Part shown: positions 17,737 through 56,535 of the stretch, piece after piece | Layout of the letters: each line of letters starts with the position of its first letter | Position numbering within the stretch: position 1 is the first letter of the stretch | Sequence record: OR529409.1 | Strand: one strand, 5' to 3' | DNA: 64,000 bases | Program-made: the position numbers and the translations under genes | The notes under the pieces: generated by a model | Database searches by the model: none | What the model was told of the DNA's origin: nothing | Seen by the model: only the letters and a program-made list of their open reading frames with translations

Positions 17737-18024
17737 ATGAAATTCACTTCTGCTGTTGCAAAACTCAAACCCGGTTACGCGATTCAGTGTACCGATTGGA
17801 ATGGGGGTAATCAGTTTGTTTTTGATGCCTCCTTGACCATGTCTCTCGTTGAAGCTCGCAAGCAGGGATTCCCGGGCCCGGTTAAACTGAAACCGGTTTA
17901 CGTGTTGCATAACGCCAAGGGTGAGCTGCAACCTGGTTGGGTGCCGTCTCAGGGTGATCTGCGCAACGAGAACTGGATCGTTGTCAAAATCAAAGACGTG
18001 TTAGCGAAGTCCGCGGTCATTTAA
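17737..18024 (+). CDS. DUF2829-family protein (Tad2/AcrIIA7-like nucleotide-signal sponge candidate)
   Basis: MKF.SAV..LK.G..I...DWNG.NQFV and C-terminal GWVPSQGDLRNENW match the DUF2829 pattern (W.PSQ.D..A.DW). Confidence 0.8.
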   Translation: MKFTSAVAKLKPGYAIQCTDWNGGNQFVFDASLTMSLVEARKQGFPGPVKLKPVYVLHNAKGELQPGWVPSQGDLRNENWIVVKIKDVLAKSAVI

Positions 18025-41777: not shown

Positions 41778-42371
41778 ATGATGATGATCAACTGCTTAGA
41801 ACCTAACGAATTCGCTCAGTTTAAAGAACAGTGGGATAAATATCTCGAGGAGGGTCTTCCCGGACTCGATGAAAGAATGAAGGGCCCGATGCTTATCCTG
41901 AACGCAATACCTGGGGTCGCAACCCGCTTTTGTTGTTCCGGTCATACCTTTGAAGAAAGGTTATCGTCCCACCCGACCAAAGCGTATTCTCGAGTGCAGA
42001 AAAGGAACTTCATTTTTGTCGTTGAAGAAGGCCGCGCCGATATTTTCTTTGCGTTTGAAATACTCTTCAAATTATTGAACAAAGACGAGTTTAGTTTTTG
42101 CCGGCCTTCTTTAGAAACCACTCTGCTCAAGAAAAACTTCGGTGAGTCGGAAACCTATCCGGTTTGGGTATTTGAAATGAATTGGGTTTACGAACTCACC
42201 GAGGAAGAAAAAATAAAGGGAAGGGATAAGACCCAGAACGAACTCTGGGAGAAACTCCTCAGAGGACTGTTCCTGATCACCGATCCAAAGGAACGTCATA
42301 AACACCGGGATATTCTGACCGAACCCTATTTCGACCAACCAGGACTTATTAGGAAAACACATAATGTTTGA
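41778..42371 (+). CDS. Hypothetical protein (LN..PG..T..CCSGH motif)
   Basis: aggag RBS; overlaps nadR start. Confidence 0.7.
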   Translation: MMMINCLEPNEFAQFKEQWDKYLEEGLPGLDERMKGPMLILNAIPGVATRFCCSGHTFEERLSSHPTKAYSRVQKRNFIFVVEEGRADIFFAFEILFKLLNKDEFSFCRPSLETTLLKKNFGESETYPVWVFEMNWVYELTEEEKIKGRDKTQNELWEKLLRGLFLITDPKERHKHRDILTEPYFDQPGLIRKTHNV

Positions 42372-43473
42372 TATCGGCATTGTCGTTGGTAAATTCGCCC
42401 CTCTCACCCAGGGGCACATCAACCTCATCACCCAAGCCTCCCTCCAGGCTAAGAAAGTTATCGTTGTGTTAAGTCACGACAATCGCTGGTTAGCGCAACA
42501 ATGTCCTCGTGATCAGAAGGCGTTGACGTTCACTAACCGTCTTCGTTGGTTACAGCAGCATTACGCCGATTCGGACCATATTGATATTAAATATATCATT
42601 GAAGATGACATCCCGGAATTCCCCAACGGATGGAGCGCTTACTGTAGCCTCCTCAGGAAGATCTACACTGAGGAACAGCACAAGAGCTATAAAGGAATCG
42701 GATCAGTCGACAACACTCGTCGGATTGCTCAAACCGTGGCCATTTTCAGTAGTGAAATCGATTACGATAAAGGTTACGAGGAGCATCTTCCTGAAGTCAG
42801 TCACGTCGTCGTTGATGCGCATCGTACAGCGGTCCCCATTAGTGCGACTAAAATTCGTGAGAATCTTTACCCCAACTGGGAATACCTCCCTTCTATCGTT
42901 CGTAAGGACTACACCAAACGGATTGTCATCCTCGGCCAGGAATCTTGCGGTAAAAGTGTCATGGTCAAAAACCTGGCTAAGATGTTTAATACGTCCTGGG
43001 TAGAGGAGTACGGTCGGACGTATTGTGAAACTGAGCTCTGTGGTTCAGAATCGACACTCCGTAGTGATGATTACCCGATCATCGCTTATCGCCATAAGGA
43101 ACTGGAAATCCAAGCCATGCGCTCGGCTAACCGCATTTGCATCGTGGATACGAATGCGTTCATTACCGAATACTACCATCGGTTGTATGAAGGGAAACCT
43201 AATCGTATCGTCTCTGCTATAGCAGCTGAGGAAAACTACGATCTGGTCATCGTGCTCGAACCTACGGTGGAATGGGTTGATGACGGCCTTCGTAGTAATC
43301 CCGAAAGACAACGGACAACTGAATTATTTAACCTCATGAGTCTGGAGTTCCCTAACCAGTTCCCGGAAGGAAGAACGTTCCATATTTCTTCCTCCGATTA
43401 CAAAGTTAGGTTCGACCAGGCTTACGAGATTATCAAAACCTTTACCCAGCGTGTTAACTCAGGTGACTTTTAA
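42364..43473 (+). CDS. nadR: Bifunctional NMN adenylyltransferase / nicotinamide riboside kinase, lacking the HTH
   Basis: VVGKFAPLTQGH (T/HxGH); VPISATKIR; Walker A GQESCGKS; EEYGRTY; VDT; PTVEWVDDGLR. Confidence 0.93.
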   Translation: MFDIGIVVGKFAPLTQGHINLITQASLQAKKVIVVLSHDNRWLAQQCPRDQKALTFTNRLRWLQQHYADSDHIDIKYIIEDDIPEFPNGWSAYCSLLRKIYTEEQHKSYKGIGSVDNTRRIAQTVAIFSSEIDYDKGYEEHLPEVSHVVVDAHRTAVPISATKIRENLYPNWEYLPSIVRKDYTKRIVILGQESCGKSVMVKNLAKMFNTSWVEEYGRTYCETELCGSESTLRSDDYPIIAYRHKELEIQAMRSANRICIVDTNAFITEYYHRLYEGKPNRIVSAIAAEENYDLVIVLEPTVEWVDDGLRSNPERQRTTELFNLMSLEFPNQFPEGRTFHISSSDYKVRFDQAYEIIKTFTQRVNSGDF

Positions 43474-44169
43474 ATGAAAGAACTTTTTAGCGTAATCTAT
43501 ACTGATTTCCAGAGCGGATGGAGTCGTAAGGAATGGCTGTGGTTATTCGTAGCCATCGCTGCTGTTGTGGCCGGGAGTATTTCCGCTTCGCCATTGGAAT
43601 TCTGGGCGGGGATATTCAATGTCGTCTGCGTTATTCTTGTTGCTAAGGGTCGACTCTCCAATTACTATTGGGGATTATTAGGGGTGGTTCTCTACGCGAT
43701 CGTTTCCTACAAACAACAACTCTACGGCAACATGGCGCTTAACGTCATTTACTTCGGATTCCAATTCTGGGGTATTTACGGATGGCGTAAAACATTGCTG
43801 AATAAGACTGATGCTGGCGTTGACGTATCCGTTAAACGATTGTCACTTCTCCAGTTCCTTCAGATGACGTTCGTTGTTTTGGCGGGGACCTTTGCGGTCA
43901 GTTTATTCCTTCGTCATATCGGGGATAGTTCACCTGTATTAGATGCGTTTACGATGGTAGCGAGCTTAATCGCTATGGGCTTGATGGTTAAACAGTATTC
44001 CGAACAATGGTTACTCTGGATACTGGTCGATATCGCTTCTATTTACATGTGGGTCATTCCTGCTTTAGACCAACCTGGTTCTTGGTCCATGGTAGCGATG
44101 TGGACAGTTATCACCGGTAACGCACTGTACGGCGCTTACATGTGGTTTGTTGTTAAAATAAATAAATAA
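43474..44169 (+). CDS. pnuC: Nicotinamide riboside transporter PnuC
   Basis: Multi-TM; AKGRLSNYYWG; QFWGIYGW; LDAFT; EQWLLWILVD. Confidence 0.93.
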   Translation: MKELFSVIYTDFQSGWSRKEWLWLFVAIAAVVAGSISASPLEFWAGIFNVVCVILVAKGRLSNYYWGLLGVVLYAIVSYKQQLYGNMALNVIYFGFQFWGIYGWRKTLLNKTDAGVDVSVKRLSLLQFLQMTFVVLAGTFAVSLFLRHIGDSSPVLDAFTMVASLIAMGLMVKQYSEQWLLWILVDIASIYMWVIPALDQPGSWSMVAMWTVITGNALYGAYMWFVVKINK

Positions 44170-46457: not shown

Positions 46458-47242
46458 TGTTAGAGACCCAGCTTAAAGATCGCCTGACCATCCTGAATAC
46501 TTTCGAATGGTTTACCTACTTCTGGAACAAATTCGAAGAAGGCATGTATGGTGTAAGACGAACCATGCATAGCGCGTCGGTTGCGATTAATAACGGCGAT
46601 TGTGCGGTAGCTGCCTTGGCAGCAGGTTCTGTTTTGAATCGCCGACTGGATGTTAACGTTGGAATGGCTCGCAATACTCTTCATGCCTGGGTCACTATCG
46701 GCAGCGATATCTTCGATACCGAATACCCCACAGGACACGATATATCAAGTTTTAAATCTAAATGGGGCGATCGTATCAGTGAGGTGGTTTTAACACCTGA
46801 GACTCTCGTAGAAGAGTTTATGCCGTGCGATCTGGTAGGTGCTTATCTCGTAAAAGAATTCTGCGGGATAATGTGTGAACCGCATCCTAAAGAAATCGAT
46901 TTTCTCCTGAATAATCCTACCGAATACGAATCACGGGAGGGTGTTCACAAAATCGAAAAGGCTATTGCGTTCGCAGTAGAGGAAACTCTGAAAGCTCGCC
47001 GGACAGTAACCACCATCAAACACGAGTCTTACTTCACTGCTAAAGAAGCCACGATGGATCATGAACTCAAAGATCACGTCAGGGATATCTATTCCGGTAT
47101 TCTGATCTGCGTACTGGTGGATAAGAACGATTACAAAGTGATCGGAGAGTCTTATCGCAAAGGACCAGAAACAGAACGCACGCTACTGGCGAGATCTAGA
47201 GCTAAGTTTATTGCTCTGGATAAACTTAAAGACGTGATCTGA
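46457..47242 (+). CDS. Hypothetical protein
   Basis: TAATG coupling, aggag RBS. Confidence 0.75.
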   Translation: MLETQLKDRLTILNTFEWFTYFWNKFEEGMYGVRRTMHSASVAINNGDCAVAALAAGSVLNRRLDVNVGMARNTLHAWVTIGSDIFDTEYPTGHDISSFKSKWGDRISEVVLTPETLVEEFMPCDLVGAYLVKEFCGIMCEPHPKEIDFLLNNPTEYESREGVHKIEKAIAFAVEETLKARRTVTTIKHESYFTAKEATMDHELKDHVRDIYSGILICVLVDKNDYKVIGESYRKGPETERTLLARSRAKFIALDKLKDVI

Positions 47243-47267
47243 CCATCTCTTCTTAGGAATATTCGAC

Positions 47268-48158
47268 ATGAAAAAAGAAATTAAAGTAGTCATCTCTCCA
47301 GACAATGTCGTTGTGGAGTTTAATCCGAATGGCGAAGCGGATAAGAATAAATCAAGAAATGAACAGCCTACTGGAAGATTAAAGCATTCTTCGCGGTATT
47401 GGTACGATCGTTTTGGGCACCCTCATCTTTTAGAGCCCGGTGAACCAATGCCTGCAAGCTTTATTAAACACTCCCAACTACAACAGCCGAGACAGCTACG
47501 ATCAACAAGGACTCGATTCCTTCTCCTGATCCCCGCGATGAAAAGTGTAAAGGGTAAAGATACCGTTATTCAAAACGGCATTTCAATTACCACTGGGAAA
47601 GTCAACATGCATGCGGTTGAGGCGGCATGTCGGACAATGGCTGAAAATATGAAAGCCATGCACCGCAAGCCCGTCTCTGATGAATTTCGCGATAAACTTT
47701 ACGAGGCGCTGGCCGCCTTTTATCATCGACATCACTCTCTAGGAAATGCTTCAAGAGAGTTCCTATACGGGGATATTATTTGCATCGAACAGTTTAAGCG
47801 CGAGTTTGGAATTGTTTTCTCCGATAAGGACGTGGACGCTTTTCTTAACGGAGTTATGCCTATTCCTGAGTTACTCAGCAAATACGTTAGAGAACTCCGT
47901 CCCGGTGAAAAGAAAATCACAACTTACTCACAATACGCTTTAGCTCTGAACACATTAACCTCGTTATTGTGTTTGTTTCCCCAAAACGTAAGAACGAGAG
48001 AAGATATTGAACGTGCTAAAGCATTACACGTTCAATTCAATATTCGTTTTGACATTGATATGTCCGAAGAGGATTTCTTAGCGATTATCTATCGCCGTGG
48101 GGCTCCTCGTCATTTCCTCAAAAAATACGCTACTACTGAAGCTACTAAAGGTAAATAA
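47268..48158 (+). CDS. Hypothetical protein
   Basis: tagga RBS. Confidence 0.75.
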   Translation: MKKEIKVVISPDNVVVEFNPNGEADKNKSRNEQPTGRLKHSSRYWYDRFGHPHLLEPGEPMPASFIKHSQLQQPRQLRSTRTRFLLLIPAMKSVKGKDTVIQNGISITTGKVNMHAVEAACRTMAENMKAMHRKPVSDEFRDKLYEALAAFYHRHHSLGNASREFLYGDIICIEQFKREFGIVFSDKDVDAFLNGVMPIPELLSKYVRELRPGEKKITTYSQYALALNTLTSLLCLFPQNVRTREDIERAKALHVQFNIRFDIDMSEEDFLAIIYRRGAPRHFLKKYATTEATKGK

Positions 48159-48335
48159 ATGCAACCACTGATCAGTCTTAAAGAGTTAGCCAAACTTCTG
48201 GGTATTTCCGTTAAAACCCTGAAAATTCGTATTAGCAAAGGTACTGTTCCCCAGCCTTTCGTTAGCGAGGGGAAAAATATGCGTTGGATGCGTTCTGACG
48301 TTGAGCATCTCTTCTCTAAAGAAGAAGTCGTTTAA
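48159..48335 (+). CDS. AlpA/excisionase-like small HTH DNA-binding protein (58 aa, not in ORF track)
   Basis: MQPLISLKELAKLLGISVKTLKIRISKGTVPQPFVSEGKNMRWMRSDVEHLFSKEEVV; ATG directly after the previous stop. Confidence 0.75.
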   Translation: MQPLISLKELAKLLGISVKTLKIRISKGTVPQPFVSEGKNMRWMRSDVEHLFSKEEVV

Positions 48336-48409
48336 GTTGTAAATATTTACAACCCTGTACTATTGTAATGGTTAACCGACCGTAAACTTTAATTAAAGGA
48401 AAAGAAGTT

Positions 48410-48691
48410 ATGTCTAAAATCAAACTGACCGAAGAACAACTCGCCGCCCTGAATGGTTCGGAATCCTTCGTCGTCTCCGGCCTGGCTGCCGGCAAAGTCT
48501 CCCTGGCAACCGACGTGTCGGTCATCACCCTCGATCTCGATCCGGGTCAGCTGACCATCGGCCAAACCCTGAAGATCAAAGACGGCGTCCTCGTCACTGA
48601 CAAAGCCCAGGAACAAAAGGCCGAAAAAGCCAAAGGTAAAAACAACCCGTCTCCGGAAATGGCGGCCAAACTTGCCGGCAGCGCCTGCTAA
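48410..48691 (+). CDS. Hypothetical protein with strongly host-like codon usage
   Basis: Visibly GC-richer than neighbours, C-ending codons; own RBS and downstream hairpin 48702..48729. Confidence 0.75.
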   Translation: MSKIKLTEEQLAALNGSESFVVSGLAAGKVSLATDVSVITLDLDPGQLTIGQTLKIKDGVLVTDKAQEQKAEKAKGKNNPSPEMAAKLAGSAC

Positions 48692-48760
48692 GTTAAGGTA
48701 AAGTAGGAGGGGGGTTTCCTCCTCCTACTCCCTCGTGTTTATTTTTTGGGAATTTCGTTA

Positions 48761-49324
48761 ATGACCATAAAGACTCTTTCCGGGAGATTATTTCTTAACC
48801 GAGATAAATCTAATCTCAACAGCGTAAGTTGGTCGGCTAAAGTCACCATTGTCGATTATGAAACGAAAAAGAAAGAAAAAATCCATAACGAGATTTTTGA
48901 CGCTAATCTTACCATTCGTAAAGGGAATTCAAGCATAGTCCTCCATACCAATAATGACGGGGTAGACAAAAATTTTGAATCTTTTTTGTCTAAGCTTCGG
49001 CTCATCAGCACTCACGTTCGTGATTTCGTTGAGCAATGCGAGATTAAGCGCAGTAAACCAACCCAGGTTAAAACCGAGCGCTACTGGTTAAATGACCCTG
49101 AAGGAATCGATAAATCATTTACTGGGTCACTGGTAAAGATATACGATACTTATAGCGACACCATAGAAATAAGTTCCTGTGAGCGATCAGCGCGTTGGTA
49201 TATCAATAGTTACCTTAATCGAGGGAAGTCCGAGATTGGCGAACTTATTGTTTTACAGCGCGCCATAGATCGGCTCATTAGAGATATTGGTATTGTTTTA
49301 AAAGAGGTTAAAAATGGGGCGTAA
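48761..49324 (+). CDS. Hypothetical protein
   Basis: Start moved to ATG 48761. Confidence 0.7.
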   Translation: MTIKTLSGRLFLNRDKSNLNSVSWSAKVTIVDYETKKKEKIHNEIFDANLTIRKGNSSIVLHTNNDGVDKNFESFLSKLRLISTHVRDFVEQCEIKRSKPTQVKTERYWLNDPEGIDKSFTGSLVKIYDTYSDTIEISSCERSARWYINSYLNRGKSEIGELIVLQRAIDRLIRDIGIVLKEVKNGA

Positions 49325-49733
49325 GAGTCACGGGGAAGATTATTCCGACGCAGAGCTTGATTTTATCGCAAGCGTAGCGCACAGCGTGCAATGTGGGATA
49401 GACTATGCCTTTGGTCTACCGGAATTATATCAATGGGGGTTGATGGGAGAGGGGTATAAAGCCCAAATGAAAGCATCTGTCAGAGCCGTTCTGGTTCATG
49501 ACAAATCACCAAAATCTCTCCATGGTAGTTGGCTTAGTCGGCTAACCCAAGAAGGTTGGGTTCATGGAGAAGTAAAGGATGCGGAAAAGAAAACCCATCC
49601 GTTATTAGTTCCATTCGATGAACTTCCTATCGAATGGAAACTTCGTCTTCGTCAATTCCGAGCAGCAGTCATTCCTTTTAGAAAAACCAAAAATACAGTG
49701 AGATCTAATCTCATTCCCTTTTCAAAAAAATAA
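49314..49733 (+). CDS. RyR (ryanodine receptor repeat) domain protein
   Basis: LHGSWLSRLTQEGWVHGEVKDAEKKTHPLLVPFDELP matches H..W......GW.YG..D...K.HP.LVP(Y/F)..L. Confidence 0.85.
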   Translation: MGRKSHGEDYSDAELDFIASVAHSVQCGIDYAFGLPELYQWGLMGEGYKAQMKASVRAVLVHDKSPKSLHGSWLSRLTQEGWVHGEVKDAEKKTHPLLVPFDELPIEWKLRLRQFRAAVIPFRKTKNTVRSNLIPFSKK

Positions 49734-49758
49734 CCGTACAGATTTAGGAACATGAATC

Positions 49759-50508
49759 ATGTCAAATACCATTCCTCACATTTATATTCCGACTGACATC
49801 AAGAATGACGCTGGCGTAGTAAACAACCGTCATAATGCGGACAACTGCGTTCGAGATATCAAAAATCTGGGCTCCCAGATCCGTCAGCACAATCTAAACG
49901 TGAAGTTGCTGGACCGCACCATGACGGGCGGACTTTATGAAACCAAAGAAGGTAGAAAATATCGCTCCCAGACATTCAAACACCATGCCAAGCTGAAGAA
50001 AGAGTTGCTCGAGCGCTTAAAGTATAAGGTCCGCGCTCTTAAAGAGATCAGGGCCATTGGGGTGGAACTTCGTCAGACGCTTTACGACATGTACCTCATC
50101 AAGTGGTTTCCGTTAAAGCTCGCCGATTTCATGGCTTCTAAAGCCTATGTCGAAACCCCATTCGACTCAGACAAAGAGAAAAACCACCTCCACCATTGTT
50201 TGGAGATGCTTTTAGCTGAGAACGGTAATGCGGTAGTTTGGCTGGCCGTTCCTTCATCTTCTGATGTTCCTCTGGCCTTTATCGCGGGCACTGATGCAGC
50301 AAACGACACCTTTGATATGGATGTGTTTTATGTACACGCGCCTACCTGGGAACGTCATTGCGAAGTAATGAAATATCTGTTTAAACGGCTCAAATCTAAC
50401 GGCGTCCATCCAGTTTCTCTGGTAAAGAACAGTCCGGAGCTAAGCCGTATCTCCAGCGATATGGTTGAGATGGGCGGATCGGTTTCTTTTGTGGCGTTTA
50501 ACTTTTAA
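49759..50508 (+). CDS. Hypothetical protein
   Basis: tagga RBS plus leader. Confidence 0.75.
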   Translation: MSNTIPHIYIPTDIKNDAGVVNNRHNADNCVRDIKNLGSQIRQHNLNVKLLDRTMTGGLYETKEGRKYRSQTFKHHAKLKKELLERLKYKVRALKEIRAIGVELRQTLYDMYLIKWFPLKLADFMASKAYVETPFDSDKEKNHLHHCLEMLLAENGNAVVWLAVPSSSDVPLAFIAGTDAANDTFDMDVFYVHAPTWERHCEVMKYLFKRLKSNGVHPVSLVKNSPELSRISSDMVEMGGSVSFVAFNF

Positions 50509-50520
50509 GGGTGATCAAAC

Positions 50521-51195
50521 ATGGGTGTAAATTCTAGAACGATGTCGCTTTCTTACTACAAGACAAAAACGACAGATGAAAAAGACGAGTTTCCTATTGA
50601 CTCCGATATTAACACTGTCATCTTTGATTTCGAAACCGCTTCGCTTGGCACAAACCCTGCGATACTCAGCATGGGTGCGTTTGCTTTCGATCGGTTTAGT
50701 TTAGAAACCACACAACGTCGAATGAAGAATCCTCAGGATAAAGATACGTTTTACCGTAATCTTAATCTAAAGGAATCGTTCTTCTTGGGTTTTGACATCT
50801 CCAAAGAAACTGGGGAATGGCATTACAAAAAGAACGGAACAAACCTCGGTAAGATGTTAGAGAACGAGGTTTCTCCCTACGCGGCCTTACGGGAATTCAA
50901 ACGCTTCATCATGTCTTATCGTCGTAAGACCGAGGACATGGTTATTCTGATTCGTCGCACTCACGCGGATTACATTTGGTTAGAGAATCTGTGTAAGCGA
51001 TTGGATGCAGAGATGTTCCTCAGACACAACGACGTGATTGACATCCCAAGCATCGTGTTTGCTAAAACAGGCGACGTTAAAGGGCATTACACCCTGGAAG
51101 AAAGTTTGTTTGAAGGCCTTGTAAGCCATCATGCACTGACCGATTGTTATTTGGACGCGCTTCGCATTTGTTCGCTGTACCAAGAAACGAAGTAA
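50521..51195 (+). CDS. DEDDh 3'-5' exonuclease (RNase T/DnaQ-like)
   Basis: IFDFET (ExoI), HADY (ExoII), HHALTDC (ExoIII). Confidence 0.85.
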   Translation: MGVNSRTMSLSYYKTKTTDEKDEFPIDSDINTVIFDFETASLGTNPAILSMGAFAFDRFSLETTQRRMKNPQDKDTFYRNLNLKESFFLGFDISKETGEWHYKKNGTNLGKMLENEVSPYAALREFKRFIMSYRRKTEDMVILIRRTHADYIWLENLCKRLDAEMFLRHNDVIDIPSIVFAKTGDVKGHYTLEESLFEGLVSHHALTDCYLDALRICSLYQETK

Positions 51196-51250
51196 AAACG
51201 TAGAGGGGTTAACGCCCCTCTCTTATTTTGTCTTTTTAGGAATTAACATC

Positions 51251-51547
51251 ATGAGCTTAGAATCTTTCTTTCGTCAATTGCTAGATTGGCCGGAATACGA
51301 AACACCATCGTACTTTATTAAAAACGGGGTATGCACGATTATAGACGGCGAAGACCAAATCAGTTTTCGCATAAGAGATATCGCCCGAATACGTTTGGTT
51401 AACCGCACCGTTAACCTCTACAGCCGCACGGGAATAGTGATCACGTTCTACGGAAAGAAACCTTACATTCTCGTAGAGAGCTCTTCTGACTTTAAAGAAT
51501 ATTTCGTTAAAATGATGTCCGATATCTTCGCTGGAAGGGAATGCTGA
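51251..51547 (+). CDS. Hypothetical protein
   Basis: tagga RBS plus leader. Confidence 0.7.
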   Translation: MSLESFFRQLLDWPEYETPSYFIKNGVCTIIDGEDQISFRIRDIARIRLVNRTVNLYSRTGIVITFYGKKPYILVESSSDFKEYFVKMMSDIFAGREC

Positions 51548-52110
51548 TGAAAAGTATCAAACGCAAGTACGTAACGGCTAATGAACTTAAGAATAGTAAG
51601 TTCATTATCTTCGGGGAAATGCATACAGCAGAAGATCGCGATGAAGTTGAATTTTTGATTCGACGGGCTCACGCGCTAAAGCCGTTTAAAGTCCTCTTTA
51701 GTGAGGAATGCGGAAGTGAAGTGTTCCTCACACCTAATGCCATTAAGCGAGGACTGGCATTAGAGAAATGGTCAATTAGTGATCGTTCGTTTAAATTAGC
51801 GTTAGAGCTCGGGTTACAAGTCGTGGGATGTGATCTTTGGGATAAATCCGTTTACGCCTGGGATAAGAAAGACGAGAACGGAATCTACACCGATTGTCGA
51901 CGTAGCTTCGCATTAAGAGAGCAGTTTATGATCGATCAGATCATGGGGTTGTGCAACCCTAACAACCCACATGTGCGCGGCTGTATGATCGTAGGAGACA
52001 GTCACCTAAGGATGACAAAAAATCCCGTTATGGGGAACGCCAGTGCGCTTGGCAAGCTTGTTTATAATCGGGGGTTAATCCTTCGTAGTGACATTGGGGA
52101 AGTGGCATGA
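51541..52110 (+). CDS. EreA/ChaN/TraB-superfamily-like protein
   Basis: IIFGEMH, FSEE, VVGCD, RE.FM, IVGDSH motif order. Confidence 0.6.
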   Translation: MLMKSIKRKYVTANELKNSKFIIFGEMHTAEDRDEVEFLIRRAHALKPFKVLFSEECGSEVFLTPNAIKRGLALEKWSISDRSFKLALELGLQVVGCDLWDKSVYAWDKKDENGIYTDCRRSFALREQFMIDQIMGLCNPNNPHVRGCMIVGDSHLRMTKNPVMGNASALGKLVYNRGLILRSDIGEVA

Positions 52111-55311: not shown

Positions 55312-56535
55312 ATGTTCGAATATCTCATTCAGATAAATCAGGTTCTCTCTTCTGTCCCTATTATCGGTGGGAGTTTAGCGGTAGCCTTAGGGGGCGGGAT
55401 CATTGCCGCCTTCTGGAAAGGACCTGCGTTACTCTCGAGGATTTTTAACTCCACTGTTGTGGTTTCCTTCACTCTTAATAACTCAGGGTGGGGCAATAAT
55501 ACCAAGCACTACATTGCGTTTATTAAATGGTTTAACCGTTCAGATATTCTTAAGATAACGCGATCTACTGGTTACGAGGCCGTTTACGACAGCTCTGGTA
55601 AAGGGCCTAGTGTCGGCAGTCATTTATTTCGATTTAAGAATAAATGGTACTATCTCAAAATCAAAGAACTCCCTTCTACGGGAAGCGAGCGTGAGAAGAA
55701 AGAGATATGTATAAAGACGTTAGGGTGTTCTGTCAGCATTTTCGACGATCTCTTCGAGGCCTTTAAGGATAAGACGGATGACGACGGAGAACTCAAAGTA
55801 AAACGGTTCAGGGACAATTACTGGTACGACGCCTGTCTTCTCAGCAGGAGGTCGTGGGATACCGTCATCTTAAACAAAGAAAAGAAGGTGGAAATAGTCG
55901 AACTCATCGAAGAGTTTTACGCGTCGAGGGAGTGGTACCGAGAAAGAGGAATACCGTATAAACTCGTTATTGTTTTGTACGGCCCGGCTGGGACGGGTAA
56001 GAGTACCGTTATCAAAGCGTTAGCACGCTTGTTTAACAAAAACCTTAACCTCATTTATCTTCACCAAATGACGGATAATACCTTCCCGGCCAGCATAGAG
56101 ACGGTAGAGCAAGATTCTTTTATTGCCATAGAGGATTTTGATACGGTTTCTTCTATAGGGTCGAGGACTAAACCTAAGGAGGAGAAAGATCCGTTCCAAA
56201 TAGACCTTTCAGACGGAGGATTAAACCTGACCACTGTTTTAAATACATTGGATGGGATCGCCGAATTGAACGGTCAGGTCATCTTTATGTCAACCAACCA
56301 TCTTGAAAAGATCGACAGTGCGCTGATCCGAACTGGTAGGGTGGATGCAAAAATCCACATCGGGTTTTTAGGTAAAGAAGAGGTCGAAGACTTCATTCAA
56401 ATTATGTATCCTGGAACAGAAGCCGATTTGGATTTTGTTACAGAAATCTCTGGGTCGGATCTTCAGTCGTATGCGTTAGCCAACAAAAGAAATTCGGAAG
56501 GTTTCTTAAAAGAGCTTAAGGACCATTTTAAATAA
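55312..56535 (+). CDS. Bcs1-like membrane-anchored AAA+ ATPase
   Basis: N-terminal TM; RSWDTVIL; WYRERGIPYK; Walker A GPAGTGKS; Walker B IAIEDFD; LNTLDG; STNH.EKIDSALIRTGRVD. Confidence 0.88.
   Translation: MFEYLIQINQVLSSVPIIGGSLAVALGGGIIAAFWKGPALLSRIFNSTVVVSFTLNNSGWGNNTKHYIAFIKWFNRSDILKITRSTGYEAVYDSSGKGPSVGSHLFRFKNKWYYLKIKELPSTGSEREKKEICIKTLGCSVSIFDDLFEAFKDKTDDDGELKVKRFRDNYWYDACLLSRRSWDTVILNKEKKVEIVELIEEFYASREWYRERGIPYKLVIVLYGPAGTGKSTVIKALARLFNKNLNLIYLHQMTDNTFPASIETVEQDSFIAIEDFDTVSSIGSRTKPKEEKDPFQIDLSDGGLNLTTVLNTLDGIAELNGQVIFMSTNHLEKIDSALIRTGRVDAKIHIGFLGKEEVEDFIQIMYPGTEADLDFVTEISGSDLQSYALANKRNSEGFLKELKDHFK

Follow-up and report, generated by a model that had tools for sequence, protein, structure and literature searches.

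The question raised by this locus is whether a small stand-alone protein with an RyR domain, encoded by a jumbo phage, is an enzyme that degrades an immune signal—as the initial annotation had proposed—or a member of the same family acting in some other way. The window, i.e. the whole analysed stretch of 64,000 nucleotides, agrees at 100% identity with Stenotrophomonas phage BUCTxx100 (OR529409.1; subtracting 62000 from a record position gives the window position), and its identity to Miami, KPN8, YC1, phiKp_32 and VB_ZK_P1, jumbo phages of Klebsiella/Raoultella, is 87–96%. The gene in question and its start signal are as follows:

49314..49733, + strand: RyR/R12-domain gene of the RyDEP family, Asp-less subclade; 139 aa, intact, ATG start
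49302..49307, + strand: Shine-Dalgarno sequence AAGAGG, 6 nt 5' of the ATG of the RyR gene, by direct reading

The open reading frame (record positions 111314–111733) is without annotation in OR529409.1, where it falls in the gap from CDS 110761–111324 to CDS 111759–112508; in other Miami-like phages it is annotated as "hypothetical protein", e.g. CPT_Miami_170 of Klebsiella phage Miami. The gene, missing from the deposited record, merits addition to its annotation. Further ORFs between 48.1 and 54.3 kb of the window are also unannotated in the BUCTxx100 record, their orthologues being annotated in phage Miami. It should be pointed out here that OR529409.1 is labelled as a Stenotrophomonas maltophilia phage and that window positions 47000–52000 share ~96% DNA identity with Klebsiella phage Miami and its relatives; checking the host label may be worthwhile.

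[quoted passage not shown] Its gene lies within the NARP1 operon, and Adps and Namat convert the resulting ADPR to NAD+ (PMC13232231). The work on phage RyR proteins cleaving gcADPR and feeding NAD+ salvage, to which the initial annotation had referred, is thus this study, and its content is as stated there. The crystal structure (PDB 35TM, 1.65–1.7 Å) is that of a homodimer with helices 1 and 4 as the dimer interface; the terminal ribose is touched by His75 and Asp117, the catalytic dyad through which RyDEP works as an inverting glycosidase, the adenine is stacked against Trp78, and the phosphates are held by His100 (PMC13232231). The purified mutants included H75A/Q, W78A, H100A and D117A/N, the dyad and the surrounding residues being reported as needed for cleavage and D117A/N being among the variants reported without it (PMC13232231). 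Of the eight homologues from other phages, none was able to cleave the signals; stable complexes were obtained with six, whereas two did not bind. Nanomolar affinity and a rescue of phages by sponging are described for H4 (Ruegeria) and H7 (Pectobacterium), and the listed sequences of H1, H2 and H4–H8 retain the His/Asp dyad (PMC13232231). For the comparisons below, DyoEdafos gp78 was taken from L005:4664–5077, the translation of which equals the supplementary sequence of the paper except for the GTG start; the Ruegeria phage V12 reference protein is identical to H4, and the Pectobacterium CB1 protein equals H7 apart from two residue differences.

The intact RyR motif claimed earlier for this gene was confirmed by several approaches, including the suggested comparison with the Pfam profile. 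The Pfam RyR family PF02026 matches residues 61–114 of the 139-aa protein with an E-value of 7e-9 and 36.3 bits (gathering cut-off 27.4), and a six-frame search of the whole 252-kb phage record with the same profile returned this ORF as its single match (36.5 bits). Among PDB sequences, phmmer recovered animal RyR R12 (Repeat12) domains (best E-value 5e-18), an RyR-like protein from B. thetaiotaomicron and the crystal structure of RyDEP with 3'cADPR (35tm_A; E-value 1.9e-8), while BLASTP against DyoEdafos RyDEP gave 33% identity over 75 residues (E-value 1e-12). The AF2 model, based on a 17-sequence alignment (pLDDT 85.5, pTM 0.77), is R12-like and consists of four helices—residues 12–33, 46–62, 66–79 and 106–122—with a hairpin in between; the top Foldseek matches were all structures of RyR R12 (6uhi, 9l90) or of the B. 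thetaiotaomicron RyR-like protein (3nrt), with a probability of 1.00 and TM scores of 0.55–0.62 to R12, the PDB copy searched being older than the release of 35TM, so that the RyDEP structure lay outside its matches. The membership of the protein in the phage RyDEP family is therefore solid. The C-terminal tail is variable, with residues 124–139 predicted to be disordered; on one wastewater contig a single nucleotide is deleted at 49724, perhaps corresponding to the 142-aa tail form seen in protein P0001, and protein P0005 is a frameshifted fragment diverging past residue 92. A 12-bp inverted repeat within the ORF (49609–49639) was taken as a chance occurrence, as no compensated conservation was seen in VB_ZK_P1.

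The residues known to contact the ligand in RyDEP were located in the window protein as follows, all according to the alignments:

49521..49523, + strand: codon of His70, equivalent to RyDEP His75 (catalytic base and terminal-ribose contact)
49530..49532, + strand: codon of Trp73, equivalent to RyDEP Trp78 (adenine stacking)
49596..49598, + strand: codon of His95, equivalent to RyDEP His100 (phosphate contact), conserved
49644..49649, + strand: codons of Arg111-Leu112, replacing Lys116-Asp117 of the family (Asp117 being the catalytic acid of RyDEP)

The catalytic base of the dyad thus has its equivalent in the window protein (His70) and the catalytic acid does not, its place being taken by Leu112. 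The MAFFT, HMM-based and BLASTP alignments concur in pairing Asp117 with Leu112 and Lys116 with Arg111. The BLASTP alignment with the H7-like Pectobacterium protein is gapless over 109 residues (35% identity, E-value 6e-21), and the assignment of Leu112 is therefore no alignment artefact. The equivalents of His70, Trp73 and His95 are invariant across the 96 sampled phage homologues—80 IMG/VR loci together with metagenome proteins and the references, picked with patterns close to the family consensus—and the position of Leu112 is occupied by Asp in 95 of these 96, always preceded by Lys (96/96).

Since the claim depends on the absence of relatives, and since this first sample was biased towards the consensus, an exhaustive search of 1.84 billion representatives was carried out. 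Only the Miami cluster and one truncated fragment were found below 1e-30, the next matches having at most ~45% identity. Among the 187 domains of the best 150 representatives at 50% identity, the equivalent of His70 is present in 186 and that of Trp73 in 185, and the Asp is found in 158, with the exceptions being scattered (Tyr, Asn and others). Those with Leu, Gln or Ala include full-length lookalikes of the window protein—P0026, P0036, P0071 and P0039—representing four distant clusters and, with the Miami group, making up five clusters below 50% identity. All of them form one clade with the Miami-like sequences in the IQ-TREE analysis (SH-aLRT 99; 67 rows, with the two trait columns left out), and the FastTree run on 165 rows gave a support of 98 for the Asp-less group of nine rows. 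At the helix-4 pair occupied elsewhere by Lys-Asp, the clade has Arg, Lys or Gln followed by Leu, Gln or Ala; the Trp stacking on adenine has been kept throughout and both ligand-contacting His residues in four of the five clusters. In P0039 (L096:2848–3252) the equivalent of His95 is replaced by Arg and the next Pro by Ser, which suggests, at the level of sequence, more drift of the pocket inside the clade. The contigs carrying the four additional clusters resemble phage DNA and have only scattered jumbo-phage genes in common; L093 encodes a homologue of the thymidylate synthase of the window (52%) and L094 homologues of two window genes of unknown function (34%).

Because the Miami group and the four clusters form one clade, the Asp-less state is an old, inherited trait of the phage lineage and not a recent lesion. 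Among the five Miami-like phages the gene has a dN/dS of 0.05–0.28, indicating purifying selection, with Arg111-Leu112 constant, and it is intact at 97–98% identity on metagenome contigs of four independent studies. It should be noted that the public runs containing the locus are metagenome contigs, some of them labelled RNA-Seq but probably DNA, so that they bear on the presence of the gene and provide no evidence on its transcription. Concerning its wider relationships, the first tree placed the window protein with the part holding two sponge-type homologues, apart from DyoEdafos RyDEP (weak, SH-aLRT 84), and the protein sits on a long separate branch with a stem of ~3 substitutions per column. 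It is also closer in sequence to a binding homologue, the H7-like protein (E-value 6e-21), than to the enzyme RyDEP (1e-12).

The missing Asp is accompanied by further changes. All five Miami-clade sequences have both Arg111 and Leu112. A comparison with 82 non-identical other homologues gave 32 positions with ≥85% conservation, and the clade deviates at nine of them, i.e. Asn26Gln, Cys30Asp, Asp35Leu, Gly55Ser, Lys77Leu, Cys97Leu, Gln108Trp, Lys111Arg and Asp112Leu, five of the nine being from polar or charged to hydrophobic or aromatic. Tyr48 is common to all five clusters of the Asp-less clade, most of the family having Gln there. From the helical periodicity, positions 108, 112, 115 and 119 would lie on a single face of helix 4, so that the face bearing the catalytic Asp in RyDEP would here start with Trp and Leu. 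The clade is a conserved and selected sub-branch lacking the residue pair that is near-universal in the sampled enzymes and sponges; judged by its sequence, the window protein is a divergent variant that lacks one defining feature of both the glycosidase and the sponge subtypes.

With regard to the gene neighbourhood, the RyR gene belongs to a putative unit of four co-directional genes—those for the 187-aa protein, the RyR protein, the 249-aa protein and a DEDD exonuclease—between two hairpins:

48704..48747, + strand: GC-rich hairpin followed by a T-run, possible upstream boundary, in the intergenic gap 5' of the 187-aa gene
48761..49324, + strand: upstream gene, 187 aa, phrog_24317, function not assigned; putatively translationally coupled to the RyR gene
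49759..50508, + strand: 249-aa gene downstream of the RyR gene, without family assignment; allele diverged from the Miami type (48% identity)
50521..51195, + strand: DEDD 3'-5' exonuclease, Rv2179c-like/RNase T-like, final gene in the putative unit (PF16473, E-value 9e-11; phrog_255)
51202..51221, + strand: terminator-like hairpin with a T-run, end of the putative four-gene unit

The start of the RyR gene overlaps 11 nt of the 187-aa gene, which ends at 49324, an arrangement typical of translational coupling, and the two genes are thus putatively coupled; the ESM Atlas offered no usable match for the 187-aa protein. Nor does this protein resemble the DprA/SLOG protein of Aeromonas phage phiAS5, the RyR copy of which retains the Lys-Asp pair. 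The 249-aa gene shares ~48% protein identity with its counterparts in Miami, KPN8, YC1, phiKp_32 and VB_ZK_P1, whereas the flanking genes share 97–100%, and its site looks like a hot-spot of allelic replacement; the BUCTxx100-type allele was found at 97–98% on metagenome contigs of four studies. The gene at 47268–48158 is polymorphic in length, with 296 aa here and in YC1 and 514–566 aa in Miami, VB_ZK_P1 and phiKp_32. A PARG_cat_N domain in the C-terminal part of its product was considered and found unsupported (E-value 0.013, 16 bits against a cut-off of 25.6), this match to the PARG helical domain being also weak in phiKp_32 (E-value 0.022) and absent in Miami. Located 5.6 kb downstream, at 55312–56535, there is a gene for a 407-aa AAA+ ATPase (PF00004, E-value 1e-11) with a BCS1-N-like N-terminal region (PF08740, E-value 3e-6, just below the cut-off).

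None of the genes for the 187-aa, 249-aa, exonuclease, 296-aa, NadR and PnuC proteins recurs beside the RyR genes in the 80 IMG/VR loci. The sole recurrence there is one Tad2-like gene, L084:2235–2510 (IMG/VR 3300032220_000738), an ORF ~3.5 kb from an RyR-domain gene on an unrelated viral contig and one case of two anti-Thoeris families in proximity.

The initial annotation had also combined the RyR gene with a Tad2-like sponge gene and nadR-pnuC into a layered strategy of sequestering, degrading and replenishing against Thoeris-type defence. Both of these modules are real and are located upstream in the window:

17737..18024, + strand: Tad2-like gene (PF11195, E-value 3.6e-14, 53.5 bits), 31 kb upstream of the RyR gene
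42364..44169, + strand: nadR (NMNAT and ribosylnicotinamide kinase) and pnuC, about 5.1–5.8 kb upstream of the RyR gene

The NadR protein (42364–43473) matches NF005988 with 254 bits against a cut-off of 201 and is followed by PnuC (43474–44169); a second, weaker Tad2-like ORF of the phage lies 5.3 kb before the window. Both modules are thus present, but the degrading step is unsupported. Nor did the link from degradation to replenishment find support: a search of the 252-kb record for the NAPRTase family (Namat/Nampt), run with positive controls, gave no match, nor did one for Adps in the same record, run without a positive control, and there was no match to Adps and Namat in the window or in the other loci. 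Moreover, the substrates from which NadR-PnuC would make NAD+ are ATP and nicotinamide riboside taken up by import, not ADPR, and the NARP paper lists this pathway only as a hypothesis. Since the modules are 31 kb and 5.1–5.8 kb apart, the idea of a layered strategy draws on gene content alone, and sequester/degrade/replenish is at most a list of independent counter-measures.

Taken as an explanation of all the above, the gene encodes a stand-alone R12-type RyR protein of the RyDEP family, belonging to a subclade of Miami-like and more distant jumbo-type phages, which most likely is no glycosidase and would act stoichiometrically, in the manner of the sponges of the family. Its ligand would be an immune signal of adenine-nucleotide type (ADPR-derived), held in a pocket that helices 2 and 3 enclose, and such binding would blunt Thoeris-type signalling during infection. 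The retention of the His/Trp/His contacts together with the strong selection argues for a working nucleotide pocket, and the phage also carries other anti-signalling genes, the two of Tad2-like type. The preferred reading, held with roughly even confidence, is a protein with a remodelled pocket that would bind, but not cleave, an immune signal derived from ADPR or otherwise containing adenine; the fold, the family, the residue pattern, the selection and the clade structure are shown directly, whereas the binding, the ligand concerned and the part played against defence are inferred. Against such a binder speak the two tested homologues that did not bind and the fact that no neighbouring gene links the RyR gene to defence, the neighbours not being conserved across RyR-bearing phages. 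As the Lys-Asp pair is almost invariant even in the non-catalytic sponges, it is probably a part of the recognition of 2'/3'cADPR, and its loss could therefore abolish the binding of these signals here; the Asp-less clade may bind 2'/3'cADPR poorly and another ligand well.

The alternative closest to the original proposal is a cADPR glycosidase like that of DyoEdafos, in which another acid, for example Asp30 on helix 1 or Glu107, would stand in for Asp117. The family does hold at least one enzyme, the base His70 and the other ligand contacts have been retained, and the clade is unique in having Asp instead of the family's Cys at position 30; nevertheless, the position of the acid is Leu112 flanked by Arg, no NARP1 partner for the use of ADPR was found, and the first tree set the protein apart from RyDEP, if weakly. 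Catalysis through the RyDEP mechanism is unlikely, because the acid is missing, D117A/N are among the mutations reported to cost RyDEP its cleavage, and retention of the dyad (H1, H2, H4–H8) left the tested homologues inactive, with none of eight cleaving (PMC13232231). The designation as a degrading enzyme is on these grounds unsupported, and a glycosidase with a substitute acid seems highly improbable. More weight, if still tentative, may be given to a binder of shifted specificity, the terminal-ribose subsite of which would have become hydrophobic (Gln108Trp, Asp112Leu, with Asn26Gln and Tyr48) and retargeted to another signal, such as His-ADPR of type II Thoeris, N7-cADPR of type IV or a different adenine-containing messenger. 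The residues specific to the clade at nine positions conserved in the family, five of them turned from polar or charged to hydrophobic or aromatic, and the occurrence of the pattern in five clusters below 50% identity are consistent with such a shift; the changes could equally be structural or concern the dimer interface formed by helices 1 and 4. Because the phage already has Tad2-like genes, of a family known for gcADPR binding, a second sponge for the same signal would be less necessary, and a binder with a new target would complement rather than duplicate them. It is similarly conceivable, while rather doubtful, that the Asp-less clade represents a third functional type of the RyDEP family, which would recognise a signal other than 2'/3'cADPR or work by a mechanism beyond those of glycosidase and sponge.

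A role outside immunity, i.e. a binder of adenine nucleotides that would sense or buffer ATP, ADP or ADPR or regulate a partner protein encoded by an adjacent gene, appears unlikely, being only somewhat better placed than the glycosidase. The animal RyR R12 domains bind ATP/ADP analogues (PDB titles; PMC13232231), the gene is putatively coupled in translation to the 187-aa gene in a unit that includes a DEDD exonuclease, and no defence-related neighbour was seen. On the other hand, every phage RyR-domain protein of known function acts on Thoeris signals (PMC13232231), and beyond the Miami group the RyR gene does not keep these neighbours.

The RyDEP proteins are the only known viral route for destroying the very stable 2'/3'cADPR signals; as a family they date back just a few months, to a single 2026 preprint with nine proteins (PMC13232231). 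A general annotation of phage genes with an RyR domain as signal degraders would be wrong. Finding a RyDEP homologue in a jumbo phage is as such unsurprising; the conserved Asp-less subclade is a concrete lead on how ligand recognition may be retuned in the R12 fold, and a pocket that can be retuned to other immune messengers, if true, bears on the breadth of this fold in nucleotide-signalling regulation.

Compared with the known systems, the window protein shares with DyoEdafos RyDEP (35TM) the stand-alone character, a length of ~139 aa, the R12-type RyR domain and the equivalents of His75, Trp78 and His100, and differs from it by the low identity (24–33%), by Leu in place of Asp117 and Arg in place of Lys116, and by the location of its gene outside a NARP1 operon, which was not found in the phage. 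Of the proteins with assay data, H7 from the Pectobacterium phage and H4 from Ruegeria phage V12 stand nearest to it (35% and 29% identity, respectively); they have the four-helix layout and the His/Trp/His contacts in common with the window protein and are non-catalytic, as would be expected of it, too, but they carry Lys-Asp in helix 4, Asn in helix 1 and Gln in helix 2, where the window protein has Arg-Leu, Gln and Tyr. The Tad2 (PF11195) and Tad1 sponges sequester ADPR-derived Thoeris signals, the activity proposed for the window protein, with a fold unrelated to it. The RyR Repeat12 domains (human RyR3, 9L90; the 6UHI chimera) and the B. thetaiotaomicron protein 3NRT, in contrast, share with it both the fold and the His/Trp/His motif for an adenine ligand, these being parts of giant Ca2+ channels or a bacterial protein, with tandem repeats where the phage protein is presumably a single-repeat homodimer.
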